From sequence record OR142618.1: a DNA stretch of 64,000 bases, one strand, 5' to 3'. The notes below the pieces were generated by a model. That model was not told the origin of the DNA. It made no database searches and saw only the letters and a list, made by a program, of their open reading frames with translations. Positions 12,799 through 46,406 of this stretch are shown here, piece by piece. A program made the translations under genes and the position numbers. How positions within the stretch are numbered: position 1 is the first letter of the stretch; every line of letters begins with the position of its first letter.

Positions 12799-13080
12799 GT
12801 GATAAAGACTACGACGAAATACATTGCTGCTTATGGTAGCGTGTTTGCATTTAACGCAAAAACATGTTATACAGTATTGTTTGTTGAGTATTTTGACATT
12901 GTTGTTTCTAAAAATCTTTTATATAAAGGATTAATATGCATAATATATTTAAATTATCATATTGTACAAATATGTTTAAATTTAAAATATTATGGGATCA
13001 AAAAGTATACCTATGCTCGTTTATGTCATTGCGGTATACTACCCTATATATTTCTGCAGGTCGTATCAGATAAATGGTAA
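12799..13080 (+). CDS. hypothetical protein (AT-rich array)
   Basis: 93-aa ORF; start uncertain. Confidence 0.4.
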   Translation: MIKTTTKYIAAYGSVFAFNAKTCYTVLFVEYFDIVVSKNLLYKGLICIIYLNYHIVQICLNLKYYGIKKYTYARLCHCGILPYIFLQVVSDKW

Positions 13081-14400
13081 CAAATATATTAGAATTAATG
13101 TATGTATGTCACCATACATATAATATAACAACTGACAGCTACTATAACATTTTCTTCTTAAATAAAAATAATAAAATTATCTTTGTTGTGTATTAAAACA
13201 AATGGGAATATTTCTCTTATCACGCAATACTTGCTATATTTGTGTTATACATGTCAGACGCATTGTATACAAGATTAAAATGTATGACAGACATGGCAAT
13301 TATGTGTGTACAATTAATGTTATCTAAGAACATATTAAATTATATAGAATTTGGTTGTATGTAATACAGTTTAATAATGGCAACAGATATTGATAAAATA
13401 ACATACATTTCATTTAACTCATGCTATATATCAGTTAATCGTTTTAGTGTTATTATATATTATGAGTACGGTAGATTGATTTTATATGATGATACCCCCG
13501 GGCTTATATAAGAACGTATTCTACATACAGTATAATGTACGTCATATCAGCATATATTATTTTGATGCATGTGAATGTAATATATTACAAGTAGAATGCA
13601 ATAATTTTCTTACTCTAACATATAAATTAAATGAAAAAACCAATAAGTAATATAGTTGAATTATCGCTTAATACGCACCGGTTTAATACCAATTATATAA
13701 CTAGTGCTCATTGTTTAGTATTTTATAATGCGTCGTCATATCCTATACATTATGTTCGTTTACACACAAACAAACGTTAACACTTATGTCGCCGGTATCA
13801 ATTCATAATATAGTTTGTATTCAACACTATCTTAATAGATGGTATACTAGAATATCCCCAACAGGTATTAATGTGTATTCAGATTCATATGTTAGAATTA
13901 GAATAAATGTTCATAAATAAAAATATTATAAATCACGATATACATTATGATATGTTGCAGGTATCTTCATGCGCACATACAATAGATTCATCGCTATGTA
14001 GTACATATCTATTGGCATGCATTTATAATAGTAATGAAAAAATTATTATAATTAGTGTTGCATATCTAAGATGAATGGTATAAAAGATATAATAGAATTT
14101 TCATCGCATGCATACGAAATATGTGCAAATACAGCAAGACTTAGAGATATAGTATACTACTCGATACTCATAAAGGCAAAAGACGGTCTTGCATTTTATA
14201 TGGTAGACTCGTTTGCATATATAACATGACCAGTATCCTTGAATGTTCTTACAATACTTCTAATATTAGGTTTCGTTTTTGTAAAAACAGTGGCATTTTA
14301 ATTGTGAACTTTCTAAACAAAAATGATGACATACATTTCATTGTAATAATTAGATACAAATATACATATCGTTAATTACTAATACATAGGAGAGTAATAA

Positions 14401-14535
14401 ATGAATAGAGCAGCAAAGAAAAATGTTTCTATATTTGTTATTCAGAATCATACTTTTAGAGTTCATGTTGTACGATATGATCCTGCGAGAATTTCAATAT
14501 ATCTCTCACTTGTACATAATTGTGTTGCATCTTAA
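14401..14535 (+). CDS. single-unit micro-protein, 44 aa
   Basis: AGGAG RBS; MNRAAKKNVSIFVIQNHTFRV... Confidence 0.6.
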   Translation: MNRAAKKNVSIFVIQNHTFRVHVVRYDPARISIYLSLVHNCVAS

Positions 14536-14643
14536 GAACTATATCTGTATAATGTAGGTTACATTTGCATGTATAGGATTATCTTTCATATAATATATGC
14601 TTATTAACTATACGACATGTATTGAATTACTTTATAGTATTGT

Positions 14644-14790
14644 ATGATTCGTAAAAATATAGTTCTAATATCACATAACACGTCAAAAATAATATTAGAA
14701 AGAAGAACAAGCAAAGTATTACGTGTTTCTATATTTAAATCAATCGGAAAATACTACTACCATTATTATACAACGTGTGGGAAACTATAA
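14644..14790 (+). CDS. single-unit micro-protein, 48 aa
   Basis: MIRKNIVLISHNTSKII...; TAATG-coupled to next ORF. Confidence 0.55.
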   Translation: MIRKNIVLISHNTSKIILERRTSKVLRVSIFKSIGKYYYHYYTTCGKL

Positions 14791-14930
14791 TGCAAGATCA
14801 TCATTTCACTACACTGTTGTATATGTCTAATCGTGCAGATAGAATAAAGATTTTTCGACAGCCTTCCTGTCTTATTGTATATATTAAGTCAGGTATGTTA
14901 TATATTAATAAACAATTCTTAAAATGTTAG
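14790..14930 (+). CDS. single-unit micro-protein, 46 aa
   Basis: MQDHHFTTLLYMSNRADRI... Confidence 0.55.
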   Translation: MQDHHFTTLLYMSNRADRIKIFRQPSCLIVYIKSGMLYINKQFLKC

Positions 14931-15700
14931 AATATATAGATACTCTCAAATATAATTACATTTTAACTGTATGCAGCGGTGTAGAGTCTATATCATTTGA
15001 ATCATTTACTAGATCAGTAATATCAGTTTCCATAATATATAATAATATTACTATCTTTCCGTACCAAACTACACGAACTATACTGTATGGTGTATAATCT
15101 TATTTTTATTTCTTGTAATGTTTCTTTAATTAGTTTTTCTATTTTTAATAAAACATTTGAAGTTTATATTTATGGAAAAATGTTAGTGGTAATTTATTGT
15201 ACAGGACTACATATATGTTAGATATATTGCTACAGTTCCAACGCAGGGTGGATACAATTAAGATGGAGTTAATGTGGCGTCACTTGCATTTTTATGAAAA
15301 AGCCGGCGAGGAAATTGAGTTATTTCATGCTATATTTCTGCCGCCCGATCACCGAAGTATTAATTAATAAAATTCTATAACAAAAACAAGTTGTATTTTT
15401 CGGCATAAAAATTTATGAATAAAGATACAAACAAAGAATCACCTATTATTAAAGAATTATATTTTATATTAAGATTGTAAGTAAAATAAAATACTTTTAG
15501 AATCTAAAACTAAAATGATCGATTGGGTATTTAAATTGTCTGCTAGTTGCTACGAAATAGACGGACAACACAGTGAGTCAATAAGAATATATAATTCATA
15601 TTGTCTTTTAGGAACTATACAATGTTATTGTGCTCAGTTAAAAATAAATTTATATAAATTTTAATATTGTGGGAAGAATTCTTTTAAATAGGCATACTAT

Positions 15701-15844
15701 ATGAATGATCTATTACAATATCAACTCACATTATGTTCCATATCTTTGCAGAAAGCTCGTTTTAAGTCAGGCAATGTGTATTACATTCTAATTGAACGTA
15801 ACGACAGCGGTAGGTATTCCCGAGATGTAAAAATACTTAAATGA
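15701..15844 (+). CDS. micro-protein, 47 aa
   Basis: MNDLLQYQLTLCSI... Confidence 0.45.
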   Translation: MNDLLQYQLTLCSISLQKARFKSGNVYYILIERNDSGRYSRDVKILK

Positions 15845-15845
15845 T

Positions 15846-16016
15846 ATGCGTATATTTGTAATATCACAAAATTGCATGACTATCAGACTTTTTTATCATA
15901 CATATTTCATTAAAGATGTAAATTATGATTCAATTTGTGTGTTATATAAAACGAATAGCAGAATTGTAATACATCCGAGTTTTACAGTAGATGAATATAT
16001 TCGATCTGTCTTATAA
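15846..16016 (+). CDS. single-unit micro-protein, 56 aa
   Basis: MRIFVISQNCMTI... Confidence 0.55.
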   Translation: MRIFVISQNCMTIRLFYHTYFIKDVNYDSICVLYKTNSRIVIHPSFTVDEYIRSVL

Positions 16017-16709: not shown

Positions 16710-17110
16710 GCTTACTAAACAGTTACTTGTTAAGTAAGTTAAAAAGTCGGTAACAGTGATGTTACAGGATACACAGGCAAATACGGTTGGAAGATGCTGT
16801 GTAAAGAACAAATATCCAGCTCATTCCTAGGCATTATAGCCTACACATTATATTTGAATGGGCATAAAAACTTCCAAAGAACCTTCGAAATTTTCTCATA
16901 GGATAGTGTATTAGAAGGAATGCACTATCAGGAAGCTGTAGGTGATGGTTGCTATCCCAGACAGTCCTTTCTAAAATACTTTAATATGATATAAAGTTCT
17001 ATGCAACCGTATACATGCTGTAAGATATTAGATTACACCATGTATTAAACGTAAAAGCAAAACCTTCAGTTAGTAATCTCGCAGTGAAGGGGGTAGGTGA
17101 GTGCTACCCA
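16710..17110 (+). ncRNA. putative large structured RNA or 5' leader (ncRNA-1)
   Basis: ORF-free; upstream TAGACA and extended TGcTAATAT; multiple helices with G-U pairs (see findings). Confidence 0.6.
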
Positions 17111-17152
17111 AACTCAACAAACAACTAATGGTCTAGAAAAGGTATAGTATAC

Positions 17153-17560
17153 ATGCAACATACTCACATTCGTTTCTACAACGAAGAAACTCAACAGATC
17201 GATAACCGCCGTGGCGCTACTGTTGCCTGGGAAACCGCCGGCAACAAGATCCGTATTTCCGTAGCAGCATGTTCGGAAATGGATAACTTCAACCGCAAGA
17301 CCGGACGTGAACATGCTGCTAGCCGTCTCGAAAGTGGCGACTACATCGAGTTTAACGGCACCGAACTTCTTAATGCACAGATGTCTTCTGTAAGTCATGT
17401 GCAGTCTGAAGGTCTCGTTCGTGCTATGTGCTTCTTGCTAGCACAAGGCAAAGGCGATCTATATTACCCGGCAAGCGAAGGTCAGCTTCGCAGCGAAGCC
17501 GAGTGCAATAGCTACAACGCCCTCGAGTACCTGAAACACCAGATGGGCATTCATCAGTAA
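17153..17560 (+). CDS. hypothetical protein, host-like codon usage
   Basis: 135 aa, GC-richer; phage-type motif ACSEMDNFNRKTGREHAASRL. Confidence 0.8.
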   Translation: MQHTHIRFYNEETQQIDNRRGATVAWETAGNKIRISVAACSEMDNFNRKTGREHAASRLESGDYIEFNGTELLNAQMSSVSHVQSEGLVRAMCFLLAQGKGDLYYPASEGQLRSEAECNSYNALEYLKHQMGIHQ

Positions 17561-17573
17561 GTATTCGGCCATT

Positions 17574-17616
17574 CGGAATTGCGATTTAGGTTTTGGAATT
17601 CTAAATCGCAATTCCG
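17574..17616. repeat. perfect 16-bp inverted repeat, 11-nt loop
   Basis: cggaattgcgatttag / ctaaatcgcaattccg. Confidence 0.9.
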
Positions 17617-17801
17617 GTTTCCAAATTCAATTTTAGGCACAAACTCGGATCCGCATTTGCATTTTGCATTTACATTTTGTGTTCTGAGTGTATATGCAAA
17701 ATGCAATCGCGCATGTTGTCGATGCATTGGCTAATCTTTTATTTTTGATAGTTTAGAAAAGATTAAGAACAGAAACTATCTGTAAATTAATAAAAATAAC
17801 A

Positions 17802-17830
17802 TTTACATTACATACACATATGCATATACT
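17802..17830 (+). promoter_or_regulatory. sigma70-type promoter
   Basis: TTTACA-17-TATACT with A-rich upstream sequence. Confidence 0.7.
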
Positions 17831-17836
17831 ATATAT

Positions 17837-18115
17837 AAGTTATGCGCTGTTGCATACGTAAATACCTCCTATGTTGTTTAGATATGTCGATTCTGGTATA
17901 ACCAGATAGACCTAAGGATGATGCTAGTGATTCCTTAGTATTGTATATTCTAGCTGAGTATAAAGAGTAAGGGGCTTTATACAAATAACAATTCCTTAGG
18001 CAAGATATACCGCTCCGTTGTGCTGACGAGCATAATTTGCCCAGATACAGAGCACGTGACTGGTCTGAGGAGCATTTATATCAGAAAGGCAGACTTATGT
18101 TTGCCTTTCTTTTTG
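17837..18115 (+). ncRNA. putative small RNA (ncRNA-2)
   Basis: Lies between a promoter and an intrinsic terminator, has no credible ORF, forms several hairpins and carries ACCUCCU near the 5' end. Confidence 0.6.
18084..18115 (+). terminator. intrinsic terminator
   Basis: gaaaggcagac-ttat-gtttgcctttc followed by T-tract. Confidence 0.8.
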
Positions 18116-18129
18116 AGCAGATATTCTCT

Positions 18130-18300
18130 TATTCACTTCCTTATTCATTTCTTTATTCATCTCTATTTCGTTTGTCACTTCCTTATTCATTTCTTTATTC
18201 ATCTCTATTTCATTTGTTATTGCAAATAAGACTAATTCTTATTTGCGTTTGTAATTTCATTTGTTATTGCAAATAAGACTAATTCGTATTTGCATTTGCA
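18130..18300. repeat. pyrimidine-rich direct repeats
   Basis: cttccttattcatttctttattcatctct x2; catttgttattgcaaataagactaattc x2. Confidence 0.85.
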
Positions 18301-18513
18301 ACGAAAAAGAATATGCAAATAATAACTAATCTTATTTGCATTTGCACTGCCTAGTATATGGATTGGTAGCATACTTGGAAATGGATAGTAAATAAGTAGT
18401 TGATTTGTTTATAAATTATACTTCTACACCATACAGATTGACCTTGCTATATATAGCTCGTGCGCGTGTATACAAGATGGTAAAAAATAATTTAAAAATA
18501 TTTTAAAAAATGC

Positions 18514-18637
18514 TTGACTTTCCATTACTACGACCTTAAAGTGCGAACTGTAGACGCAGTGTGTAGAGCGCTACATAGTAAGCAACGCAGAAAGTAAACA
18601 AAAAATGCTTGACGCAATGCAAACTAGGCTCTACACT
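18514..18637 (+). promoter_or_regulatory. tandem sigma70-type promoters with A-tract UP elements
   Basis: TTGACT-17-TAAAGT (18514-18542) and TTGACG-17-TACACT (18609-18637), both preceded by aaaaatgc. Confidence 0.75.
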
Positions 18638-18720
18638 GTATACAAGCTTAAGGGGTAGGTGCCCCGAAAGTGTAGTAAGTAAACAACATAATCCTTCCAT
18701 CAGCTACAGAGGTATACAAC

Positions 18721-19425
18721 ATGTCCGTACATATCACTCGTCAACGTACCGACAAACAGCACGTCCTGGCACTGGCAATCAACGGCGTGGTCATCGGCCA
18801 GACCATGGCTACTTACACCACCCCGAGCAAGCGCACCTGGTCGGCGACCGCCGAAGTCGAACTGGCAGACGGCACTGTCGTTCAGTTCGAACAGAAGGAA
18901 GTGTTCAGCGCGATCCGCATCACCCGCGAAATCGAGCAGGCGCTCGACGGCAAGGAACTGGCGGCCAAGTACACCCCGGAACCGAAAGTTCCCGGGCAGA
19001 AGGGTCCGAAACCGCTCACCGACGAAAGCCGGCTCAGCAACGCGATCGCGATCGTCAAAGCGGCCATCACCCACACCGGCTTCGACGAAGCTACCCTGGT
19101 GTTCGACGGGGTCGACAAGGCCAACTTCGAGCAGAACAGCACCTCCGTCGGCAACAAGCTGCGTCGCCTGGGCTTCGTCTTCGAACTCGGCGCCGGCAAG
19201 GCGAACAGCGGCAAGGGCTTCCTGATCAACCGCAAAGCGCAGGCCGAGGCAGAAGCTGCCGAACGCAAGGCCAAGCGCGACGCCGAGAAGAAGGAACGCG
19301 AAGAAAAAGCGGCGGCTGCCAAGCGCGAAGCTGACGAACGCAAGGCCAAGCGTGAAGCCGAACGCGCCGAAAAGGTCGCTGAAAAGAACGCAGCGATCGC
19401 CGGGGCAGCGCAGGAAAGCAAGTAA
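18721..19425 (+). CDS. paralog A of a three-member GC-rich family; K/E/A-rich C-terminal tail
   Basis: Shared domain NGVVIGQ...TPSKRTWSA...EQKEVFSAIRITR; GAGG RBS; terminator follows. Confidence 0.9.
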   Translation: MSVHITRQRTDKQHVLALAINGVVIGQTMATYTTPSKRTWSATAEVELADGTVVQFEQKEVFSAIRITREIEQALDGKELAAKYTPEPKVPGQKGPKPLTDESRLSNAIAIVKAAITHTGFDEATLVFDGVDKANFEQNSTSVGNKLRRLGFVFELGAGKANSGKGFLINRKAQAEAEAAERKAKRDAEKKEREEKAAAAKREADERKAKREAERAEKVAEKNAAIAGAAQESK

Positions 19426-19440
19426 TTGCCCAACTGCGCC

Positions 19441-19469
19441 AGAAGGGGAGCAATAGCTCCCCTTTCTTC
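19441..19469 (+). terminator. intrinsic terminator
   Basis: gaaggggagc-aata-gctcccctttc. Confidence 0.8.
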
Positions 19470-19494
19470 ATGACCACACAATCTATATACTACT

Positions 19495-19731
19495 ATGTCT
19501 TTAACTATATTTTCTATATCAGCTAATTTGTATACAATAACTTGGTATTCTGCGCAACTGACACAATGGTGTTATATAGACATAATAACACGCGACGCTA
19601 ATATTTTTATAACCTATCCATTTTATAATAACATATTTGTATCTAAAATTAGTTCTAATACAATAATTGAAGAAAAAATTGAAGAAAAATATGAACACTA
19701 TATTAGAGATATGTCGTGGAATAAGAAATGA
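19495..19731 (+). CDS. hypothetical protein
   Basis: 78-aa AT-rich ORF. Confidence 0.5.
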   Translation: MSLTIFSISANLYTITWYSAQLTQWCYIDIITRDANIFITYPFYNNIFVSKISSNTIIEEKIEEKYEHYIRDMSWNKK

Positions 19732-20391
19732 CTATATAACAGTCAATAATTTTACATATGACTACTATCTAGAGGTAAACACACCTGCGTTTTCTTTAAT
19801 GATAATTATTCCGACAGTTCCTATATTAGACAATATTTGCATTACTTTTATAAAAAAGTATTAATATGAATATATTCTTTATATCAAACAGTCTATCTAA
19901 TATACTATATCATAAAGCTTATGATATACATATGATAGATATTAAGATTAATAATTCTACTTCTATTTGGCTTACATATTCTTTCAATATTACTAAGGTA
20001 TCATTTAAATATATTATCTGATTCGTTTTCTTATTGTATGAGTTGCAATTGCAAATTACTCTTATTTGTAATTGCATATAAACAATCAGTTGCTATTAAA
20101 AGTATTTGCTGTTAATATATTATATAACAGTGCAATTGATATTTTAAAATACAGTGTGCAATACATCTTACATGTATTAAAATTTGTGTGTTACTTATTT
20201 TGCATTAATGATTAATATACCTCTCCTACAGTACAAAACTCATACTATAAACAATTTGTTCGGGCGATCGTTCTCGAAAAGTATACAAGTGAGAGATAGC
20301 AATCTAATTATACTTGTTAGTTTCTATATAGAAGGTTCTAAATATAGAAAATTTGTATATAACAAAGAATACCTCAAAGAGATTTCAGCAT

Positions 20392-22365: not shown

Positions 22366-22386
22366 AATTATACATAATCAAAGAAT

Positions 22387-22415
22387 TTGACATTTGATGT
22401 GTATACTAGTATAAT
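22387..22415 (+). promoter_or_regulatory. perfect-consensus sigma70 promoter
   Basis: TTGACA-17-TATAAT. Confidence 0.9.
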
Positions 22416-22421
22416 TTGCTC

Positions 22422-22952
22422 ATGCTGTCGTAACAGCTACTTTGTTCCATTCACAAGCAGCTCTGTTCCATTACTGGATATTGGTAGTAGAAACTATCCC
22501 CATCGTGCCCACAGTATTGTTCTGTTAGAGACAGATTAAAACATACAAAAGTGGGTTATTTAAATTATGATTTTGGGTGCTGAAGTATAGTCGTTAGACA
22601 AGGATATGTCTAATGTTGCAAAGGACTATGCGAAACGTATTATATATCTTATCCGATATTAGATATGTAATAAAAGGATGAAGCTCTGGTAGAAACAGAG
22701 TGTAATTCTTGCTTGTATATCACACGGATATACAAAAGAATATACACACCAACTTCAGCATTGATGTAAATTTTCTAGCATAGGTATATAACATCGATGT
22801 TCCGGGATTCATTGGAAACAATGAGAGAATGATGTAATCTGAGGAAAAAGGTCCCCGCCTCGTCCATATTACGAAATGGTTTTGAGTACTTATGCCCTCG
22901 TCCTATATTGGCATATGGGTTTTATATTTCTCCCGTAATTACGGGAGAATAT
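22422..22952 (+). ncRNA. putative ~530-nt structured RNA (ncRNA-3)
   Basis: No ORF after a consensus promoter; long-range helix tgctgaagt/acttcagca, GAAA tetraloop, ends at a 22-bp palindrome. Confidence 0.7.
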
Positions 22953-23281
22953 AATTTCCTGAACCTACTTGGAAATGGACGCTTCTGCTGTGCTTCGCAC
23001 ATCATCTAAGGGCCTTCACCCTTACCGCTAAGAGCAAGAGCAAAAGCAATATAATTACAAATAAGAATTAATTATTGTTTAGTTTTATCGTAATGAATAT
23101 GAAGATAAAAACTAAACAATAATTCACATGTAGCGTTAGCTACTGTGAATATCTACTATAATATTAACCATATATGTATACAAGGGCATATTATGGCTGT
23201 TACTTGTTGACAGTTTGATATATGTGTTACACTGCATAAATCAAATGTACATTACAATGTTTTGATTATTAGGAACATACT

Positions 23282-24579: not shown

Positions 24580-25131
24580 ATGTGCTATGCATGGGATATC
24601 AAAGACGGGGATGATATCGAAGTCGAAGCAGTTATGGATGAACGAAGCTATGAGTGGACCGGCAAGTTACGTATCATCCAGTATCGGATCCAAGATCGGT
24701 GGCGTGTTATTATCAATATAGTAGAATTTTGGAGTCATTCTACTGAAAGTATACTGAAAGAACTTGGTATAGAAGCTAAACACATTACTAAAGGATATGC
24801 CACACTTAGTATGGTTCGTTTCCCGGAGGTTGATTACCTATTTAGTGTAACACCCGATAATGCAGATTATGTAACTGTTAACCGCAGTGCAGTAGATATT
24901 TCTGACAGTTGGTTTGTTGCAAAAAACATAAAAGCAGTTATGTATCATTTGGGATCTGAAATCCAGATCACTCCGTGGTTTGTGCGTAAAGATAGTAGCG
25001 AGACAAATTTCAATTGTATTGATCGATTAGTAGCTCTAGTAAAAGAGAATACTGACGTTGACACGTATCAGTACATCAAGGTAGGTTGTCCTGAGGACAA
25101 GTCATTTTACTTTGCGTGGATAGACAAATAA
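24580..25131 (+). CDS. hypothetical protein
   Basis: AGGAG RBS 7 nt before ATG 24580. Confidence 0.8.
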   Translation: MCYAWDIKDGDDIEVEAVMDERSYEWTGKLRIIQYRIQDRWRVIINIVEFWSHSTESILKELGIEAKHITKGYATLSMVRFPEVDYLFSVTPDNADYVTVNRSAVDISDSWFVAKNIKAVMYHLGSEIQITPWFVRKDSSETNFNCIDRLVALVKENTDVDTYQYIKVGCPEDKSFYFAWIDK

Positions 25132-25220
25132 TTCGTTTGCTATACGTACTAATACGTTGTATACTGTTAGTACGTATAGCAAAAGTAACACATAACGTTT
25201 TGATTTAATGGAGCCCTAAC

Positions 25221-25514
25221 ATGAAAAAAGAATTTGAATCGCGGATTCGGACTCCCTCTCCGGCGCCAGCGCCCCGGACGCCCGATGTGTGCAGCGAGTG
25301 CAATGACACCGGGAAAGTCTATGACGAAAGCGGCGCCGGTCCGTGGAGTTGCTACGCCTGTACCGGTAACCCGGAGGTGATCGGCTACGCAAACGGCGAT
25401 GAGTTGGACAACATGCTGGATGACCGCACTGCTGTTCTCTCTCCAAGGAAGACCAGTTTTCACACCGTGCCAGTGTATCGACTGATCCACACCCAAAACA
25501 AAAGTTTTCAATAA
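25221..25514 (+). CDS. hypothetical protein with CxxC...CxxC Zn-ribbon, GC-rich
   Basis: CSECNDTG...CYACTG; GGAG RBS. Confidence 0.75.
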   Translation: MKKEFESRIRTPSPAPAPRTPDVCSECNDTGKVYDESGAGPWSCYACTGNPEVIGYANGDELDNMLDDRTAVLSPRKTSFHTVPVYRLIHTQNKSFQ

Positions 25515-25562
25515 AATCGATATGGAATTGGCCCTCCGGCAAGCCGGAATAGAGGTGAAGCC

Positions 25563-25772
25563 ATGAAGACATTTTTGAAGATGCTCGCATATTGCGTGCT
25601 TGGGACATCCATTGGCATTGCCATCAGCCAATGGTTCATCTTCGTCCTAGAGATGAGGCTTGGCGCCGTGCTCTGGTACATCGTTGGCCTTGGTCCTGTG
25701 CTGCTTGTGTTTTGCATTTTGGGCAGCTTCCTTCAATGGCTGATTCATAAGAACTTGGAGAAAAAGCAATGA
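25563..25772 (+). CDS. small membrane protein, GC-rich
   Basis: GAGGT RBS; two hydrophobic segments. Confidence 0.7.
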   Translation: MKTFLKMLAYCVLGTSIGIAISQWFIFVLEMRLGAVLWYIVGLGPVLLVFCILGSFLQWLIHKNLEKKQ

Positions 25773-25843
25773 CCGACCACGCAGAGCTGCGGAGGCTGGC
25801 TAAAGAAGTGATCCGAATTGAACGAAATGAGGATGCAGCATGA
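25769..25843 (+). pseudogene. 24-aa remnant resembling the N-terminus of Ead/Ea22-like prophage proteins
   Basis: MTDHAELRRLAKEVIRIERNEDAA*; ATGA-coupled on both sides. Confidence 0.45.
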
Positions 25844-26376
25844 GCATTGACTGGAGCAAGGCACCAGAGGGTGCGACGCACTACCAACCGGAATCACGTG
25901 GCTTCCATGCGGCATGGTTCCGACTTCAAGGGGGGAAGGCTCGCGAAATGTGGGTCGTGATACCCGGCGGTGCGCTTGAGCACATCATCGATCCGACTGT
26001 CTTCGACGAGAGCATGCAGAACCTGATCGCCCGCCCCGTAGAACCTGCCACCTGGAACGGCCAGGGCCTGCCGCCGGTTGGCCTGATGGTGGAGTGGAAG
26101 GCAGGCCTTGATCACGACTGGCAGCGCGTAACCGTGCTTGCCTACGCCAATGGCGACGCGTGGTTTCAGCCTGAGGATGGCCCGTCTTTCATCGTCGGCA
26201 ACCCGGCAAACTTCAGGCGTATCCGCACCCCCGAGCAGTTGGTCGCCGAGGAGCGGGAAAAGGCGATTAATCAGATGATTTCTGATGCTGGATACGTAGA
26301 TCCGAAGATTGGCACATTTGTGGCTATGCGCAATCTCTACGACGCCGGCTACCGGCGTCGGGAGGAAGGGAAATGA
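25840..26376 (+). CDS. Pseudomonas temperate-phage-type hypothetical protein
   Basis: MSIDWSKAPEGATHY ... WNGQGLPPVG ... RTPEQLVAEEREKAI ... LYDAGYR, a typical prophage-family pattern. Confidence 0.8.
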   Translation: MSIDWSKAPEGATHYQPESRGFHAAWFRLQGGKAREMWVVIPGGALEHIIDPTVFDESMQNLIARPVEPATWNGQGLPPVGLMVEWKAGLDHDWQRVTVLAYANGDAWFQPEDGPSFIVGNPANFRRIRTPEQLVAEEREKAINQMISDAGYVDPKIGTFVAMRNLYDAGYRRREEGK

Positions 26377-26639
26377 GCAGACTGACAGCTGAGCAAGCCC
26401 GTGACATAGCGCGAGCGAAAGACGATGTCGATACTATCCTCAACGACATCGCCAAAACAGCCGCAGAAGGAAAGTACGTGTACACTACCCGCGCCTATGG
26501 GTTCGGCACAGGCGGCGGACGGCGCAGCGACGCGATCCTCAAAGTGTTGCGTAGCCTCGGCTACGACTGTGCTGTGCATGCTGAGGGACGCCAGTCTGTT
26601 GACCTGTGGCTTGAAGTGAAATGGGGAGACAAGCCATGA
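26373..26639 (+). CDS. hypothetical protein, GC-rich
   Basis: 88 aa, ATGA-coupled, GGAAGG RBS. Confidence 0.75.
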   Translation: MSRLTAEQARDIARAKDDVDTILNDIAKTAAEGKYVYTTRAYGFGTGGGRRSDAILKVLRSLGYDCAVHAEGRQSVDLWLEVKWGDKP

Positions 26640-27082
26640 CTAACAACCCCGGAGATTCAAAAATGATCGTAGAAAACGCCAAGCAAGCCGCCGAAGACTT
26701 CAAAACTTCCATGGCTAAGATTTTTCCGAATTACATCGCCAGGGCGTCGGTTTCCGATAACCTTGGTCCGGCGATGACAATTTCGTTTGCGAATGTCGGT
26801 TGCGCTTCCGAAGCCCCTAACAGCATTCTGATGAATGCGAGCGGTTACATGCGCTTTATGATGCATTTGTGTGACAATTGCGGGAATGTATTGCCAGAAG
26901 GTTCGCCGGTAGAAATTGAGCTACTAATGTGGTCTATCCCCTATCGTTCGGAAGTGATCAAGTTCCGCAAGATCAAGGGCAAGACACCAGCCGAAGCTAT
27001 GCAAAAGCTAGTCAAGTGGTTTGAAAAAACGCTGAAGCTATCCGGGGTCTGTAATGGTCTCCACGTAGGACACGCAGAATGA
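26636..27082 (+). CDS. hypothetical protein
   Basis: ATGA-coupled start MTNNPGDSK; GGAG RBS. Confidence 0.7.
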   Translation: MTNNPGDSKMIVENAKQAAEDFKTSMAKIFPNYIARASVSDNLGPAMTISFANVGCASEAPNSILMNASGYMRFMMHLCDNCGNVLPEGSPVEIELLMWSIPYRSEVIKFRKIKGKTPAEAMQKLVKWFEKTLKLSGVCNGLHVGHAE

Positions 27083-27480
27083 ACATTGTGTTGGACAAAT
27101 TGCTGTTTGGCGGTTTCATCGACCAGCACCGCAATGAACTTGCCCAGCAACAACTGAATCGGTTGTTTGCCAAGTACGGTGAGCCGAAGATTGGTATCAC
27201 ACGGGCATGCTTTCTATCTAAGCATTACGTCCTGAAGTTCCCGATTAATGACAGGGGTGAGCGGTGCAACGATTGGGAAGGTAGCTGTTCCGGCAGCTAT
27301 TTGGCACGCGGACGCTGGCTAGAAATCGGAGGCTTCATTTGCGTCATGCAAGAGCGTTTGGTTGAAGTGGATTGGAAGAACAACACCCATGCAAACTTTC
27401 CTGATTGGGTAGGCAGCATAGATTGTGGTCAAGTCGGCTACGATAAACATGGCGTTCTGAAAGCGTATGACTTCGGGTGA
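27079..27480 (+). CDS. minimal protein-kinase-like fold protein (putative)
   Basis: GITRACF, VLKFP, NDWE, VMQERL, IDCGQVG and terminal YDFG in canonical kinase order. Confidence 0.55.
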   Translation: MNIVLDKLLFGGFIDQHRNELAQQQLNRLFAKYGEPKIGITRACFLSKHYVLKFPINDRGERCNDWEGSCSGSYLARGRWLEIGGFICVMQERLVEVDWKNNTHANFPDWVGSIDCGQVGYDKHGVLKAYDFG

Positions 27481-27729
27481 AGCATGACCCCGGTCGACCC
27501 TGACAGTGGCATTAATAGCATCAGTAAAACCACAAGAAATTCTCATAGCTGAAATGGAACAGTTAAGAACAAAGAACAGTGAATACAAAGAAAGAGGTTT
27601 TTAGCGGCTAAATTGTTGCGCTTTTCTTCGATATTTAGTATATTTCTATTGACGTGCTAGGGCATTTTGTACTAATATAGCACTTGAAGGCTAGGTATTC
27701 CGCCAAAGTCTACTACCGGAGAACTTCCG

Positions 27730-28017
27730 ATGATTGTTAAAGTCGCTGCTTTCCGTAACGCTGTTGACCACCTTTTCCGCGTGGTCAATGTCGACTATCA
27801 CGCTTGCGTGCGCGCAGACGAGCTGCGCAACTGGCAAAGCATTGCAAGTCGTGTTCTAGCCGAAGTCGATGCCTTAGAATGCAAGCGCGCTAGACAGGAC
27901 GACCTCGATCAGCAGCGCCGCAGCATCGAAACAGCCCGCGAACGCATGGACCAGGCAGCGCAACGCATCGCCCAACTCGAAACCGTTATCCGTCCCGCTG
28001 TAGGGCGCATGCAATGA
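27730..28017 (+). CDS. hypothetical protein with C-terminal coiled coil, GC-rich
   Basis: TTGACG promoter at 27649; GGAG RBS. Confidence 0.8.
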   Translation: MIVKVAAFRNAVDHLFRVVNVDYHACVRADELRNWQSIASRVLAEVDALECKRARQDDLDQQRRSIETARERMDQAAQRIAQLETVIRPAVGRMQ

Positions 28018-31442: not shown

Positions 31443-31945
31443 ACAAAGCAATACAGCATAACGCATTGTAAGCAACACTAAACGGGAGACACCGTCCCGC
31501 AAGCAGCCCGCCCGCGATGTTCGCGGGCTGCGGCAAACAGGTGTACAAGGTCTAGTAACGTGGAAGGCGCAGCATACCTTTCCTTAAATCGGAAATCGGT
31601 CAATGACGTACCTGCCCCTGGACACTGCTAGACCTTGCTGCTACAGGCGGGACAGCTACAAAGGTACACTGTATGTATCTATGCTTTACCCCGCTTTGTA
31701 GCAGGTCTTAAAACGGTCTACTGGCATATGCCTTAGTGCTAGTAGGAATCATTAACCTAAAACTATTATATGCTTCCTGGAGGTGAAGAGTATGCCGCCG
31801 CAGCATTAAATATACATTATGATGATGATAATTATGAATGCCGAAACACCGCTTCGATTCGTTTAAAAGACAGATGTCTGAATCGAATGTTTTTGGGCAA
31901 AAAGGTCCCTTAGATGGGATTTTTTTGCGGCTGCTAACTAGCAAA
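31443..31945 (+). ncRNA. putative ~500-nt two-domain structured RNA (ncRNA-4)
   Basis: GC-rich and ORF-free; nested helices gtcccgc/gcgggac, caaggtctag/ctagaccttg, gcagcccgc/gcgggctgc, gctacaaag/ctttgtagc, tgctagt/actagca. Confidence 0.7.
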
Positions 31946-32042
31946 CGCGAATTAATCTTATTTGCAATTTAAGAAAAATACCAGTTGACTGTAGCTTGCT
32001 AACATAGTACATTTAACTCATAAATCCGCAGGAGTAGCAGTT

Positions 32043-34617: not shown

Positions 34618-35070
34618 ATGAAACTTCATAAAATGAATGGTAATGTTTTTATTCGGTTTGAAGTAGATACTTCATCGGATAATTTTGTAGAGAAGGTTTA
34701 CGAAGAAATTATGCAACTTCCTGCAAAATTGTATTTCGAAAAGATAGAACGTAGAACTTGGTTCTGTAGCTTTTACACAGGCTACGACGAATTGGTAGAA
34801 TTCGTTAATGAAATAAAAGACAGAGTTAGTTCAGAAGGTGTTTTCTTTGACAGGCCATTGCAGCTAACTCTTATCAATTCGGGCGGGGTAGAAGTAAATA
34901 TTTCCGATATAGAACCAGATCTTCACTATCTCTTTGATAACGATATTACAACTACAAAACTTATCTCTATGGAAGGATCCTGCAATATGGTAGATTTGCT
35001 CATGTGCGAATGGGTACCTATTAGCATTCGAACTTCTATTGCTAAGGCATTTACTGACAAATTTTTATAA
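34618..35070 (+). CDS. hypothetical protein
   Basis: ATG at 34618 in track ORF 34552. Confidence 0.7.
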   Translation: MKLHKMNGNVFIRFEVDTSSDNFVEKVYEEIMQLPAKLYFEKIERRTWFCSFYTGYDELVEFVNEIKDRVSSEGVFFDRPLQLTLINSGGVEVNISDIEPDLHYLFDNDITTTKLISMEGSCNMVDLLMCEWVPISIRTSIAKAFTDKFL

Positions 35071-35162
35071 TAAAATACCTGTTGACGCATATAGCAATAT
35101 GCGCAATAATATGCACGAAAGCAAGAACAGATCCAAATAACCTTTTTATAAGAGATTATATT

Positions 35163-35810
35163 ATGTCTAAGTATCTTTCTTTTAGCGTAAACGTAGACAT
35201 GGACAACACTGGTCTGTTGAAATGGTTGCGTCCTACCACCGGTCGGTTGGATGGATTCGAAGAGAGTGTTAAAAACTTCGTTTCTTCTTTCCGCTCAGTC
35301 GAGTCGAGCCCTACGGTGTTTCAAGTTTACGATGACGATAACCAGCCGTTGCAAGTAAGCAACATGAGCTGCTTCTTCCGATACTTTCCGGTGTATGGTA
35401 TGTGCCTTGCACCGGGTTCGATGGTCCGGGAACAATATCGTCGGGAGATCCTCGACTACACTACTGACGAGTTCTGTTCATTCAGTAACTACTTCAGTGA
35501 CGGCAAGGCCATCCGCGGCGGGGCAGTCTTGTGGTGGGATGTAGAGAAAGACTTGGTATGGTCTGTTAGTCCCGAATTGATTCGCCTCGTATATGCCCGC
35601 TTGCAAAGCGATCTGGACATCGGGTGGTATCATCTCGGGCAAGAAGTTATGGCTGTAGTTCCCCTTCGTTCGTATCCCAACGATGTTGCCCGATGGAAAT
35701 ATGTACAAGGTAATATCTGCGGCATCGACGATCAAGTGAGCATTCGCAGCAATGTCGACGGTCGAGTCACCCGGCTTAATTGGGAATACATCGTGACCCA
35801 AGGGGGATAA
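35163..35810 (+). CDS. hypothetical protein, intermediate GC
   Basis: ATG at 35163 after a GAGA RBS-like site. Confidence 0.8.
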   Translation: MSKYLSFSVNVDMDNTGLLKWLRPTTGRLDGFEESVKNFVSSFRSVESSPTVFQVYDDDNQPLQVSNMSCFFRYFPVYGMCLAPGSMVREQYRREILDYTTDEFCSFSNYFSDGKAIRGGAVLWWDVEKDLVWSVSPELIRLVYARLQSDLDIGWYHLGQEVMAVVPLRSYPNDVARWKYVQGNICGIDDQVSIRSNVDGRVTRLNWEYIVTQGG

Positions 35811-35811
35811 T

Positions 35812-36039
35812 ATGGGCGGTCTTGCTAATATAGTTGCATGCATAGCTTCTATTGTTGCAATTGTTACTGGAAATATCTGGTATTTTATCGCACTGTTGCT
35901 ATGCACAGCATTTATGTCGCCCGAACGAAAAGGATCATTAATTGATGTATTTTCGGTCATTGTCGGGATTGGTGCTATATTTAACGGAGACATTGCATGG
36001 GGCATAGTGTTCATAGCATTAGTGATAATAGTTAAATAA
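35812..36039 (+). CDS. small multi-TM membrane protein
   Basis: Highly hydrophobic; terminator at 36041-36067. Confidence 0.7.
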   Translation: MGGLANIVACIASIVAIVTGNIWYFIALLLCTAFMSPERKGSLIDVFSVIVGIGAIFNGDIAWGIVFIALVIIVK

Positions 36040-36829: not shown

Positions 36830-36906
36830 TTTCATTATCAATATCTTTTTCTTTTTCAATATCTTTTTCTTTATCTTTTTCTTTATCTTTTTCTTTATCT
36901 TTTATC
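36830..36906. repeat. atctttttcttt tandem tract
   Basis: About 4 copies of (t)atctttttcttt. Confidence 0.8.
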
Positions 36907-37029
36907 ATTGCAAATACAAATAATAATTATTCTTATTTGCATTTAGTGATGTAAATAATTCTTATTTGTATTTGCGATTAATTCTTATTTGCTACAATAG
37001 ATAGAATAAGAATAATTCACATTTGCAAT

Positions 37030-37139
37030 GCCGCTAAAAGCGCTGTAAGCGCTGTATATTGCGTAGTAGTGCTAAGCAATGCGTTAGTACAGCTACGCGC
37101 ACAAACGCTGTTATGCGCGCTTGTAGCGCGTTTTAGGGC
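37030..37139 (+). other. ~110-nt imperfect long hairpin
   Basis: ctaaaa/ttttag, gcgctgtaagcgc/gcgcttgtagcgc, gcgtag/ctacgc and gtgctaa/ttagtac; the mismatches are G-T on the + strand. Confidence 0.7.
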
Positions 37140-37374
37140 CCATGCGCATGCGTATACCTGTAGCTTTACATAGTAAAATGCAGAAAAGACGTCGTCTATT
37201 AACGTGCCTGTCTTAATAGAAATATACAATTGTACAATACCTGCGAAATCCTACACACTACAGACATGCAAACAAGCAATGTGCTTGCAAGCATAAAAGT
37301 TTTTAAAAAGTAGTAGACACAGTGTAGCATCCCTAGTAAGCTACACACATAAACAACACAACGGAGTACAAGCT

Positions 37375-37845
37375 ATGTCTAATGTAAGCATCCCTGCTGT
37401 AACTGTAGAGAACATCGGCACCCTGCGCATCGTGCGCACCGCTAACAAGGAGGTCGGAAGTGTGCTCGACCTAAAAGTTAACGGGGTAGTAGTAGGGCAA
37501 GCTTTCCCGCTCTACAGCACAAAAACCCAGCGTAGCTGGAACGCGAGCATGCACGCTACCGTTAACGGCGTAGAGGTGCAGTTTGCACAGGAAGGCGTGT
37601 TCAGTGCAATCCGCATTGCACGGGCGTTCGAGGATGCAGTAAAGCACGCCGTTAGCAACGGCGAACAAGGGCAACCCCTCCCCGCGCCGGCGGCGGCAGA
37701 AGCGCAAGCAGAAGCGCAAGCAGAAGCCCCGGCAGCGCAGACCGAGGATGCGCCGGAGACCCCGGCAGCCGAAGCTAAGCCCGCCCGCAAAGGCGGCAGC
37801 AAAGGCGGCAGCAAAGGCGGCAGCAAAGGCGGCAGCAAAAAGTAA
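37375..37845 (+). CDS. paralog B of three-member family; A/E/P linker and (KGGS)4 tail
   Basis: NGVVVGQ...STKTQRSWNA...AQEGVFSAIRIARA; TAGACA-17-TAAGCT promoter at 37314; GGAG RBS. Confidence 0.9.
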   Translation: MSNVSIPAVTVENIGTLRIVRTANKEVGSVLDLKVNGVVVGQAFPLYSTKTQRSWNASMHATVNGVEVQFAQEGVFSAIRIARAFEDAVKHAVSNGEQGQPLPAPAAAEAQAEAQAEAPAAQTEDAPETPAAEAKPARKGGSKGGSKGGSKGGSKK

Positions 37846-37999
37846 GCGCTGCTAACACAGGAAAGGGGCAACTGCCCCTTTCCTTTTATGTCCTAGTTGT
37901 AAACGCAAATTAATCTTATTTGCATTTGCACAAGTCATTCTCCGGTTGCATTACTGCGGTAAGATGTTAGTATATATGTAGCTATACGGAGTAATTGCT

Positions 38000-38230
38000 A
38001 TGAAGCGCAAGTACCTAAAGGCACAGTTCGAGCATGTCAGTGCCGGGCGAGTTGCAAAAGAACTCGACGAGAAGTTCAATTTCGTTGTAGGCGATAATGT
38101 ACACTACTGGGCCATCTTCGAAACTAATGTCAAACCCGAAGTTCTACAAAAGGCAATTCATGACATGAACGGTGGTGCTTACTGCCATGCATATTCTATT
38201 CCGTATGAGGATGTAGAGGAGTATCTCTAA
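38000..38230 (+). CDS. hypothetical protein
   Basis: GGAG RBS, immediately after joint promoter. Confidence 0.8.
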   Translation: MKRKYLKAQFEHVSAGRVAKELDEKFNFVVGDNVHYWAIFETNVKPEVLQKAIHDMNGGAYCHAYSIPYEDVEEYL

Positions 38231-38444
38231 TGCTCTACTATCGCGATGTTTATGCAGGTGTTTGCTGTTAAACTTGTATAGCCGGCACCAGGTCGCATAT
38301 AACACGCCTAGCCCCATGCAAACTGCGGACATGATCCATTCACGCCTGTAGCGTATGTTCGAAGAATTCGGTTGCAAGCCCGACGGTTGCTCTGCTAGCA
38401 TGTACGAGGATAAGACGCACATTACACTAGCCTGGAGCAAGTAA

Positions 38445-38735
38445 ATGGATATGTCGATTGTGAACAAGCGCTTCGAGAAAGAACTAGCGCTGTTTAATGT
38501 CGAAGTTCTCAGTAAGCGCACAGTGAATCATATAACGAAACCGAACATCGAAGTTTCGTTCAAACTAAAGGGTCATACTACTGAAGAAGAGATGACCACT
38601 GTTACTCAGCTCGCACGTCCCATTATGGAGTATGTAAGCGGACGTAGGGTGGTCTGGGCACATACCGGTCTTTGGCGCTCAATGAAAGACGACCTCGAAG
38701 TAGCAGTGCTGACAATGAAGTTATCCAAACAATAA
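38445..38735 (+). CDS. hypothetical protein
   Basis: GGAG RBS; followed by joint terminator. Confidence 0.75.
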   Translation: MDMSIVNKRFEKELALFNVEVLSKRTVNHITKPNIEVSFKLKGHTTEEEMTTVTQLARPIMEYVSGRRVVWAHTGLWRSMKDDLEVAVLTMKLSKQ

Positions 38736-38890
38736 GAGAAAGGGGCACTTGCCCCTTTCCTTTTATGTCCTAGTTGTAAATGCAAATTACTCTTATTTGC
38801 ATTTGCACAAGTCAATCTCCTGTTGCATTACTGCGGTAAGATGTTAGTATGTGTTTAGCAGTAACACATAACTAGCAGGAGCAACAGACA

Positions 38891-39151
38891 ATGGCAAAGG
38901 TTTACCAAGCAAGTGACAGCACCGGTGAGTGGCAGTGTGTTGTTATCCTCCCCGACGTTGACTCGGCTCTTCTGTACGCTACCAAGCGCTGCGCGCAAAT
39001 GGGCAAGGTGGAAGTTGTCGGTCCGTGGGCTCCTGTAATGCCACAGCATTACGCGAACATGCCGAAAGGTGACGGTGCGGAAGTGCAGTGGCGCCTCATC
39101 CCGCCGGGTTGCGGTGTAGCCTGGTACGTCACTTCGGTTAACGACAAGTAA
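38891..39151 (+). CDS. hypothetical protein, GC-rich
   Basis: GCAGGAG RBS after joint promoter. Confidence 0.8.
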   Translation: MAKVYQASDSTGEWQCVVILPDVDSALLYATKRCAQMGKVEVVGPWAPVMPQHYANMPKGDGAEVQWRLIPPGCGVAWYVTSVNDK

Positions 39152-39161
39152 GGAGACAGAC

Positions 39162-39464
39162 ATGAACCTCGTTACTCTGTGGATCAACGGGCGTGCTGTG
39201 ACTGCCCGCAAGGTTGTCAGTAAACACACTGTCCGCAATCCGAACAGTCCGATCGATATCGAGACTATCGACGTTGTTCGACTGCGTCTGCCCCGTGGTG
39301 TTCGTGCTAGCAGTTGGGCACTCCGTAAGGCAGTGTACCAACTCATGGAGCAAAGCTGTAGCTGCTCGAGAGACTGTTGTGGACACTGGTTCGGCGGCGC
39401 ACGCAAGATCTACATTAAAGGCAGAGACGTCAGTGTAGTTGCCGGGTACCAGCGCAATTACTAA
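39162..39464 (+). CDS. hypothetical protein with CSCSRDCCGHW motif, GC-rich
   Basis: AAGGAG RBS; Cys cluster. Confidence 0.8.
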   Translation: MNLVTLWINGRAVTARKVVSKHTVRNPNSPIDIETIDVVRLRLPRGVRASSWALRKAVYQLMEQSCSCSRDCCGHWFGGARKIYIKGRDVSVVAGYQRNY

Positions 39465-39719
39465 AGGAAAGGGGGCAACTGCCCCTTTCCTTTTATGTCC
39501 TAGTTGTAAATGCAAATTATTCTTATTTGCAATGATAATATCCCCGCCACGCAAATAAGAACTAATCTTAGAACAAATATTCACTTGATTTTTCTCCCAA
39601 TATAGTGTATGTGTATACCGGATAAGATTAAGTCTTGTTTGCTTGTTACATTTTATATGTTGCAATGCTAAGGCAATGATACTATTATATGTACAGTAAT
39701 ATAACCCAGGGGATATAAC

Positions 39720-40025
39720 ATGTCAGCAGAATTGAAGCGGTTGTTAGAGATTTTTCCAACCTTTAAATCATTCATTTATGCTGAAGGGGCATATGGCATT
39801 GATGTTTGGAAGGCTACGGGTAGTGTTACTTTGGAACAGGTATTCAATGCTGTTAATGCAGGTAATGCAGAATGGCAATGTAAAGGTGATCCAACATGCA
39901 GCCTGGAACAAAACAGCATGTATATTTTCATTACTATTCAGGAACCAGACTACACAGGAATGGTTGATATTGATGTTTGTGTAAAGATTACTAACGGTAA
40001 TGAAGTAAGTTATCAAATAGCATAA
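39720..40025 (+). CDS. hypothetical protein
   Basis: GGGG RBS; terminator at 40029-40059. Confidence 0.75.
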   Translation: MSAELKRLLEIFPTFKSFIYAEGAYGIDVWKATGSVTLEQVFNAVNAGNAEWQCKGDPTCSLEQNSMYIFITIQEPDYTGMVDIDVCVKITNGNEVSYQIA

Positions 40026-40244
40026 TAAAGGAAAGGGGGAATTAATCCCCTTTCCTTTTATATATAATATACTTATAAATAAGAATTAATTTTATTTAAT
40101 TAAAATTAGAATAATTCTTATTTGCACGATCCCGCACTTATAACACAAGTATATTACAAAAGCAAGAATAAAATTAACTTGACACACATATGTAGAATAT
40201 AGCACAATGTGTTTATAAATTATATTACTACAGGAGTGTTAACC

Positions 40245-40915: not shown

Positions 40916-41065
40916 TATTTGGATTTGATAATTGGAAATATAATAGTAATTCTTATTTGCAATTATAATAAATTCTTGTTTACTTTTAAAATAAAAGCAA
41001 ATTCTAGTTGCATAGCTAGAGGCACTGTGCTAGTATATTAAAAAATAAAGACAGGAGTGTTATTC

Positions 41066-45160: not shown

Positions 45161-45532
45161 GTGTTTTTATTTCTTATAACTATATTCAATAATAATGGTA
45201 AAACATATATGATTGAAGTAATTAAATGCATTATATGTAATGAATCACCCCGTCCTGGTGCATTTGCAGCATTTATTACTCAAATGCGTCAAGTAGTAAA
45301 ACCTCATGCAACTATAACTAGTTGGAATATTCTGCCCGGCATTAATGATGATCCAACTAGTTATATTCATGCATTCAGTATAAAATCAAAAACAGCATAC
45401 AATATTAATCAAGCAGTTACCTTATTACTAATGTCATTATATAATGCTAGTGAATATAAGACTAGCTACATACCTACTTCGTTTAAAGACTATGAATCTA
45501 CAATAAAACATTTATCTAAGATCAAACAATAA
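45161..45532 (+). CDS. hypothetical protein
   Basis: 123-aa ORF; start probably at the internal MIEVIKC. Confidence 0.55.
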   Translation: MFLFLITIFNNNGKTYMIEVIKCIICNESPRPGAFAAFITQMRQVVKPHATITSWNILPGINDDPTSYIHAFSIKSKTAYNINQAVTLLLMSLYNASEYKTSYIPTSFKDYESTIKHLSKIKQ

Positions 45533-45839: not shown

Positions 45840-46109
45840 ATGGATGCGCGTAGCCTGCTTCGCCTGATAGAAGACCTCCCTATAGCTGTCTTCGGCAGCA
45901 CAATGGATATTGTTCATCGAGTCAATTTTGAAGCTCTGGACAATGCCGCCCACACCGACGGGGTAAAAGTCCACGAAGACGGAACCAACCGTTATACGGA
46001 CGCTTTTGTTGATTGTTGGCTCCGCAGCGTCGAAACAATTTTGGCCTGTTGCGATTTTGTGACCGAGGATGCCGCTAAGTGGTATATCGAGCACGGTGTC
46101 AAGTTTTGA
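45840..46109 (+). CDS. hypothetical protein, GC-rich
   Basis: GGAG/AAGGG RBS. Confidence 0.7.
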   Translation: MDARSLLRLIEDLPIAVFGSTMDIVHRVNFEALDNAAHTDGVKVHEDGTNRYTDAFVDCWLRSVETILACCDFVTEDAAKWYIEHGVKF

Positions 46110-46357: not shown

Positions 46358-46406
46358 CACCAACTAAAGCCCCGTCCCAGGCGGGGCTTTACCGAAGGAA
46401 AAGATC

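Follow-up and report, generated by a model that had tools for sequence, protein, structure and literature searches.

An intergenic locus of Pseudomonas phage Callisto, a PA5oct-like jumbo phage of the genus Wroclawvirus, is best explained as the gene for a structured non-coding RNA (ncRNA), one of three Wroclawvirus paralogs, that would be modular, produced early and made by the host RNA polymerase; we put the probability of this combined reading at about 0.6. That the locus, hereafter copy A, is an expressed structured ncRNA gene of a three-paralog family is very probable, and that its RNA acts as a stand-alone molecule in trans is a tentative proposition which we hold at slightly less than even odds. 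Copy A was previously unannotated, and one member of the family, ncRNA004 of phage PA5oct, is already noted as a transcript. The original prediction of a promoter-driven, ORF-free structured RNA gene is supported by two paralogs in the same genome (copies B and C), by covariation in the 5' domain of the RNA and by the + strand transcript ncRNA004.

The window analyzed here is a 64,000-nt stretch of sequence record OR142618.1 (Callisto). The proposed ORF-free stretch of ~530 nt was confirmed, and the gap between ORFs is even larger (22366-23281, 916 nt). This gap is 100% identical to positions 208366-209281 of the Callisto OR142618 record and 97.6-98.9% identical to sequences in ten other records, all from the genus Wroclawvirus; the Wroclawvirus records compared were PA5oct, MIJ3, Paride, Ettore, Deifobo, Cassandra, PAC2, 30-2 and 30-3. 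The PA5oct counterpart (12810-13720) is blank in the PA5oct annotation and lies within the long terminal repeat reported by the PA5oct authors (PMC7318152). The coordinates of the features discussed below are collected in Table 1.

Table 1. Features of copy A and its surroundings (window coordinates) and of the two paralogous loci (coordinates of the Callisto record, marked "record"); variability refers to columns of the alignment of 10 genomes.
Feature	Position	Strand	Remarks
Perfect sigma70-type promoter	22387-22415	+	-35 at 22387-22392, 17-nt spacer, -10 at 22410-22415
5'-terminal hairpin GCUGU-CGUA-ACAGC	22424-22437	+	in minimum-free-energy (MFE) and consensus folds, pair probability 0.96
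Family-defining 5' domain, four-way junction	22458-22582	+	125 nt, common to the three paralogs, covariation
P1, closes the junction	22458-61/22579-82	+	consensus fold
P2, 4-bp hairpin with hypervariable tetraloop	22467-70/22475-78	+	consensus fold
P3, 6-bp hairpin with AGAA loop	22483-88/22493-98	+	consensus fold
Long arm P4 to P8	22499-22577	+	invariant 10-nt bulge UAUUUAAAUU, UAGNG apical loop
Two-tier hairpin with loop AGGAUA (AAGGA motif)	22585-22631	+	z = -4.4
Block 2, AAAGGAUGnnGC then hairpin CUCUG-GUAGAAA-CAGAG	22673-22701	+	93% identical to B, 89% to C
Copy-specific body	22702-22921	+	hairpins 22700-22747, 22757-22801, 22809-22824 (GAAA loop); C-rich motif 22851-22865
3' hairpin, presumed terminator or 3'-end stabiliser	22922-22954	+	core perfect palindrome 22928-22949, tail UAUAAUUUCC
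AT-rich hairpin	23070-23124		55 nt, 17-bp arms; short hairpin 23126-23148 follows directly
Copy B, 5' part	record 154694-154816	+	second block 154930-154958; local BLAST
Copy C, 5' part	record 271314-271442	+	second block 271662-271688; local BLAST
Unit B	record 154615-155285	+	= PA5oct ncRNA004
Unit C	record 271123-272130	+	RNA ~970 nt
Upstream gene, last 300 nt			variable columns 5.7%
Interval 22422-22555	22422-22555		variable columns 4.5%
Interval 22961-23281	22961-23281		variable columns 6.5%
Downstream gene, first 300 nt			variable columns 19.3%

The predicted TTGACA-17-TATAAT promoter of copy A is present on the + strand at 22387-22415 as the sole perfect match in the window, with 0.09 expected from shuffled sequences, and its -35 and -10 hexamers are invariant across 10 related genomes. 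Genome-wide, we counted eight perfect sigma70 sites with a 17-nt spacer against ~0.27 expected; therefore, the phage clearly uses such promoters. Transcription is predicted to start near 22422, directly before the 5'-terminal hairpin (22424-22437), for which covariation argues neither for nor against pairing because the hairpin is invariant. By analogy with the annotated ends of PA5oct ncRNA004, the copy A RNA is predicted to run on the + strand from ~22422 to ~22955-22975, just past the 3' hairpin, giving ~535-555 nt. The perfect 22-bp palindrome described in the original prediction lies at the core of this hairpin, and the 22-nt element scored as terminator-like; the sole bulge of the hairpin is removed by a 1-nt deletion in two genomes. 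The U-tract is poor, and transcription may therefore continue into the next genes.

The leader of copy A also partly duplicates the start of the 5' domain, from the 5' strand of P1 to the 5' half of P2, as a 17-nt direct repeat (22435-22451 and 22456-22472, 82% identical), and alternative pairing is possible there.

Local BLAST found the 5' part of the RNA twice more in the Callisto record, in each case on the + strand and in a large unannotated gap. The loci, unannotated in Callisto, correspond to 154526-156334 for copy B and 270992-272504 for copy C. Like copy A, both are preceded on the same strand by a sigma70-type promoter (TTGACA-17-TAAACT for B, and TTGACA-17-TATAAT with an extended -10 for C). 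Copies B and C are located exactly where leftward gene blocks switch to rightward ones. Furthermore, at all three loci, the 3' hairpin of the RNA is followed after 40-150 nt by an AT-rich hairpin of 54-55 nt and then by a hairpin of 9-10 bp, with the AT-rich hairpin loops of B and C being identical over 32 nt. The genome contains few hairpins this large; its perfect hairpins are mostly bidirectional terminators of 30 nt. Downstream of copy B, a very AT-rich stretch of ~1 kb carries two 52-nt direct repeats and two canonical terminators.

Copy B corresponds to PA5oct ncRNA004 (EST35_0353, "putative lncRNA", 246116-246734, 619 nt, + strand), which was annotated from strand-specific RNA-seq (Lood et al. 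2020, PMC7318152). The annotated start of ncRNA004 is 18 nt after the -10 element of promoter B, and its RNA-seq-based 3' end is ~24 nt past the GC-rich hairpin of B. It shares with copy A the 5' domain (136 bits with the covariance model R1 described below, 79% identity), the AAGGA-loop hairpin, block 2, a sigma70-type promoter, a GC-rich 3' hairpin and the downstream AT-rich hairpin. In contrast to copy A, it has an unrelated body after block 2 and a weaker -10 element (TAAACT), and sits at a divergent gene junction, whereas copy A belongs to the early region of the long terminal repeat. The PA5oct study presents ncRNA004 only as a transcribed ORF-free region, with structure, paralogy and function not reported (PMC7318152), and we found no paper in the searchable literature that links it to other loci or gives its structure.

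The copy A RNA had been expected to be very abundant, an expectation that the data do not support. With 0.08, 0.03 and 0.02% of the phage reads at 5, 15 and 25 min, respectively (PMC7318152), the paralog ncRNA004 is an early-biased but minor transcript, and the RNA-seq-guided PA5oct annotation, which comprises four ncRNAs (PMC7318152; five were counted in the 2018 preprint), leaves the copy A locus blank. The blank at 12810-13720 argues against a prominent discrete copy A transcript; reads from the repeated domain were perhaps discarded. Two other PA5oct ncRNAs, ncRNA001 and ncRNA002, account for 1-5% of the phage reads each (PMC7318152). Their counterparts (~17819-18054 and ~31507-31957, respectively) are not matched by R1 and are RNAs unrelated to the three-paralog family.

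The family is defined by the 5' domain, which in copy A is 79-82% identical to those of B and C (blastn), with stretches of 34 and 26 nt that are identical in all three copies and a diverged segment between them. Covariance model R1, built for this domain, identified exactly three sites in the 287-kb genome, all on the + strand, with a full-length + strand match at copy A (169.5 bits, E = 5e-38), 149.7 and 136.4 bits at the paralogs and 15.8 bits for the next match in the genome; because R1 was built from the sequences of the same three sites, these scores are partly circular, and independent support comes from blastn and covariation. The domain measures 125-138 nt across the family. In a model-guided alignment (16 sequences, 10 of them distinct), standard pairs fill 98.7% of the alignment cells, and compensatory changes keep the pairing in 11 of 40 pairs, located in P1, P6, P7 and P8. 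None of 500 shuffles reached the observed level, and shifting the partners by 1-3 columns left 0-3 such pairs. Likewise, RNAalifold on an independent MAFFT alignment yielded 10 compensatory pairs in the domain. Within copy A, the P6 partners C22510U and G22553A have changed together in phi30-3 and in one Logan contig. P2 to P5 show no variation and are thus neither supported nor contradicted by covariation. Invariant G-U pairs occur in P3, P5, P6 and P8, and A-U/G-U swaps at 22470, 22535 and 22541; therefore, the pairing of the domain fits the + strand only. The tetraloop of P2 is different in almost every lineage, and the 10-nt bulge of the long arm contains the palindrome AUUUAAAU.

Downstream of the 5' domain, the three RNAs share two further elements in the same order. 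In B and C, a hairpin with AAGGA in its loop is found at a place matching that in copy A, with unrelated stems, and ~90-220 nt further along the RNA follows block 2 (29 nt), which retains AAAGGAUG in all three copies and forms in each a hairpin of the CUCUG...CAGAG type with a GUAGAAA-like loop. Beyond block 2, the body of copy A has no similarity to paralogs B and C. The copy-specific remainder of each RNA measures 260-450 nt, yet is highly conserved between genomes. The body hairpins of copy A are present in both the MFE and the consensus folds; downstream of 22702, the body has no covariation support and shows a handful of substitutions among 24 sequences, two of which weaken the hairpin 22713-22735.

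The MFE of copy A has a z-score of -4.6 on the + strand and -3.0 on the - strand relative to shuffled sequences, and that of B is -5.7. Among 56 random 540-nt windows of the same genome, the mean z-score is -1.3 and 7% reach z <= -4, so stability alone is weak evidence. All complementary segments listed in the original prediction exist in the sequence, and the local hairpins tatagtc/gactatg, ttagaca/tgtctaa, ctctg/cagag and ttgtatatc/gatatacaa, as well as the tcattg-GAAA-caatga tetraloop hairpin, form in the MFE fold. The proposed closing of a multi-stem domain around the first four of these helices is not the conserved architecture, and the conserved domain lies upstream, at 22458-22582. The 9-bp helix proposed to close the multi-stem domain (22578-86/22752-60) is expected in 540 nt at roughly chance level, uses the 3' strand of P1 and thus competes with the conserved domain, and has no counterpart in B or C; at best, it represents an alternative conformer specific to copy A.

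Sequence constraint on the locus is pronounced. Only 6 of 405 columns (1.5%) vary at 22556-22960 among 10 genomes (Fisher p = 0.002 against the upstream gene, and p = 1e-11 against both gene flanks together). Compared with its coding neighbours, this non-coding segment shows 4-13-fold lower variability and is therefore under selection. In their own regions, the RNAs of B and C also belong to the least variable sequence.

The RNA could not be assigned to a described class, in line with the original prediction that it belonged to no named one. At the gathering threshold, Rfam 15 gave no match in the whole window, including GOLLD, ROOL, riboswitches, ribozymes, RsmY/Z, 6S, tmRNA and tRNA-like families, and at relaxed thresholds the best matches had E > 1 and fell outside the copy A RNA, with nothing in the RNA regions of B and C; ARAGORN found no tRNA or tmRNA. 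In overall character, the copy A RNA resembles GOLLD, ROOL and similar RNAs: it is a phage-borne RNA of several hundred nucleotides that contains no ORF and folds ornately, and its GAAA-type loops, as in GOLLD/ROOL-like RNAs, suggest tertiary contacts. Unlike GOLLD and ROOL, the family occupies one genus, has three diverged copies per genome that share only the first ~280 nt, and has no Rfam match.

No relative of the three-paralog family was found outside Wroclawvirus, and the family is so far confined to this genus. Exact-pattern scans with invariant 20-25-mers gave no match in viral, metagenome and bacterial-genome collections. The neighbours of copy A and the neighbour of copy B have no relatives beyond the genus in IMG/VR, GenBank phages and a 5.8-billion-protein set, and for the RusA-like neighbour of copy C, the only relatives are remote and non-syntenic.

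Ten Logan contigs from independent runs end exactly at 22502 or begin exactly at 22480, with their other ends scattered, and one further contig ends at 22504. A physical DNA end at 22480/22502, such as a genome terminus or cohesive end, was considered and rejected. The breaks occur because the 49-54-nt near-identical repeat shared by copies A, B and C exceeds the 31-mers of the Logan assembler; a 71-nt query across the break site has three match places in every Wroclawvirus genome. One contig and one metagenome scaffold from ENA run through the site without a break.

If copy A is a structured ncRNA gene of this kind, the host sigma70 RNA polymerase would transcribe it early after DNA entry, and the terminal hairpins would bound and stabilise the RNA. 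The invariant 5' junction could then be the module that all three RNAs use for docking or assembly with one partner, most probably a protein, with the copy-specific 3' body carrying the individual function of each RNA.

The put RNAs of phage HK022 are nascent-RNA antitermination elements that consist of two stem-loops and measure ~70 nt. Their example suggests the main rival explanation, which we consider unlikely: copy A would be a cis-acting leader whose 5' domain modifies the host RNA polymerase in the manner of put, nut or boxA, though with an unrelated fold, and the modified polymerase would read through hairpins and terminators into the rightward gene blocks, with the "ncRNA" being the terminated fraction. 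As with HK022 put and lambda nut, the elements are present in multiple copies per genome of a phage that depends on the host RNA polymerase, and all three lie between an early sigma70 promoter and terminators. The 5' domain lies 36-150 nt downstream of three strong sigma70 promoters, the positions of B and C at the exact switches from leftward to rightward blocks would suit a leader, several hairpins follow each copy, and two canonical + strand terminators separate B from its first gene. Moreover, the genome is full of strong bidirectional terminators, and PA5oct runs its whole cycle on the host RNA polymerase (PMC7318152). However, the distance from promoter to first gene (0.86-1.7 kb) is much larger than in put, the next gene at copy A apparently has its own promoter (TTGACA at 23207), and a 125-nt four-way junction bears no resemblance to two short stem-loops. 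A cis-acting leader leaves the conservation peak in the 400-nt copy-specific body unexplained. The 125-nt junction could also represent a new nascent-RNA class that mediates protein-independent processive antitermination in cis, or else its palindromic bulge AUUUAAAU could enable the formation of RNA oligomers; we regard this pair of ideas as speculative, with the odds clearly against it. If antitermination were confirmed, it would explain how a 287-kb phage without an RNA polymerase of its own drives long rightward units through many terminators, and if the bulge paired between molecules, the three RNAs could form homo- or hetero-oligomers.

By analogy with ColE1 RNA II or the T4 uvsY/gene-34 pattern, the three RNAs might instead be replication-origin transcripts that activate or prime DNA synthesis through an R-loop, with the nearby AT-rich hairpin as an unwinding or single-strand initiation site. 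A promoter-driven, folded non-coding transcript of ~550 nt next to AT-rich DNA is indeed reminiscent of these origins, as are the scattering of three copies over the 287-kb genome, the location of B and C where transcription switches direction divergently, the conserved geometry of the AT-rich hairpin after each copy and the very AT-rich, repeat-containing DNA after copy B. Nevertheless, we consider this explanation improbable: a conserved junction architecture is not a known feature of ColE1 RNA II or T4 R-loop origins, which are not known to need a 125-nt junction whose loops are invariant and whose stems change in a compensatory manner, GC skew tracks gene orientation without any feature at the three sites, and no origin-binding sites were identified.

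There is similarly little to recommend a decoy function, in which the loop AAGGA would titrate the host CsrA-family proteins RsmA/RsmN, as RsmY, RsmZ and CsrB do, or mimic Shine-Dalgarno sites. The persistence of AAGGA in the loop just after the 5' domain of A, B and C on unrelated stems, together with the retention of AAAGGAUG in block 2, would be accounted for, the copy B loop conforms to the ANGGAN hexaloop type, and AAGGA shows a mild excess in copy A (3 observed, 0.6 expected, p = 0.02). An Rsm/Csr sponge of the classical kind is nonetheless unlikely because GGA motifs are not enriched in the three RNAs (9, 10 and 14 against 7.2, 8.7 and 11.6 expected, p = 0.25-0.34). In the predicted structures, most GGA triplets are paired, only 1-2 exposed AAGGA sites per RNA are conserved, the 2-3 candidate sites per 540-970 nt are far sparser than in known sponges, and no Rfam Rsm/Csr model matched.

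Small protein-coding genes or a decayed gene at copy A are very improbable: the longest ORF in the gap, the 50-aa ORF at 22387-22539 (+), begins at the TTG inside the -35 hexamer (others are <=33 aa), the length of the annotated - strand ORF varies by genome (168 against 99 nt), no small ORF matched PHROG families, the paralogs differ in the shared domain by 5-nt and 1-nt indels, which are not multiples of three and therefore exclude a shared reading frame in the 5' domain, and the changes between them fall in base-paired doublets rather than at third codon positions. This leaves, on the coding side, the small ORFs of 30-55 aa annotated over the locus on both strands in Ettore, Deifobo, Paride, Cassandra and PAC2 (five GenBank records, among them the 50-aa ORF and 30-55-aa - strand ORFs) and a 22-aa ORF at 22613 with an AAGGA motif 8 nt upstream, for which B and C contain no equivalent downstream of their AAGGA hairpin; the curated PA5oct record and those of MIJ3, Callisto, 30-2 and 30-3 annotate nothing at copy A. 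The small ORFs over all three loci in several GenBank records are thus very likely spurious and call for a correction of the annotation. At copy C of PA5oct, four tiny ORFs on both strands (gp142-145) overlap the covarying domain and are probably spurious as well.

The genus Wroclawvirus includes PA5oct, a proposed model jumbo phage and therapy candidate, and Paride, which kills dormant P. aeruginosa; these phages run on the host RNA polymerase, and most of their early genes are without known function. With a structured ncRNA gene at copy A, a blank 0.9-kb gap becomes a defined gene linked to two sister loci, and the shared module gains a covariation-supported secondary structure. This provides three concrete loci to knock out, along with a 125-nt RNA that is well-behaved enough for structural studies and pull-downs.

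Several additional features of the window were recorded. Past the 3' hairpin of copy A, the hairpin 22986-23005 (7 bp, GCUGUGC/GCACAGC) has a 3-nt loop that reads TTC, GAA, AAA or TTT depending on the genome, that is, two reverse-complement pairs, as if flipped by template switching on a DNA hairpin; its stem shows a compensatory C-G to A-T change in Deifobo and a one-sided intermediate in Callisto. Further large perfect hairpins of the early region (43-53-nt span, arms of at least 14 bp) are located at 17574-17616, just upstream of the ncRNA001 counterpart, at 25136-25183 and at 45313-45365. The 2.9-kb stretch 13080-15991 contains neither an ORF of at least 60 aa nor a tRNA, and PA5oct annotates a run of 40-55-aa ORFs there. 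Islands of 40-55% G+C (17001-20000, 25001-28000, 35001-36000, 37001-40000 and 46001-48000) stand out from the remainder of the genome (25-35% G+C) and may be acquired genes; the G+C content of the PA5oct host is ~66% (PMC7318152). Finally, an operator-like motif, GCAAATAAGAnTnA, and its inverse, AATTCTTATTTGC, are dispersed over the window, often as inverted pairs, and cluster in intergenic stretches of the early region (18220-18340, 36900-37030, 39500-39580, 40050-40130 and 40920-41000), with one copy at 23055-23071; this motif set looks like candidate binding sites for one regulator.
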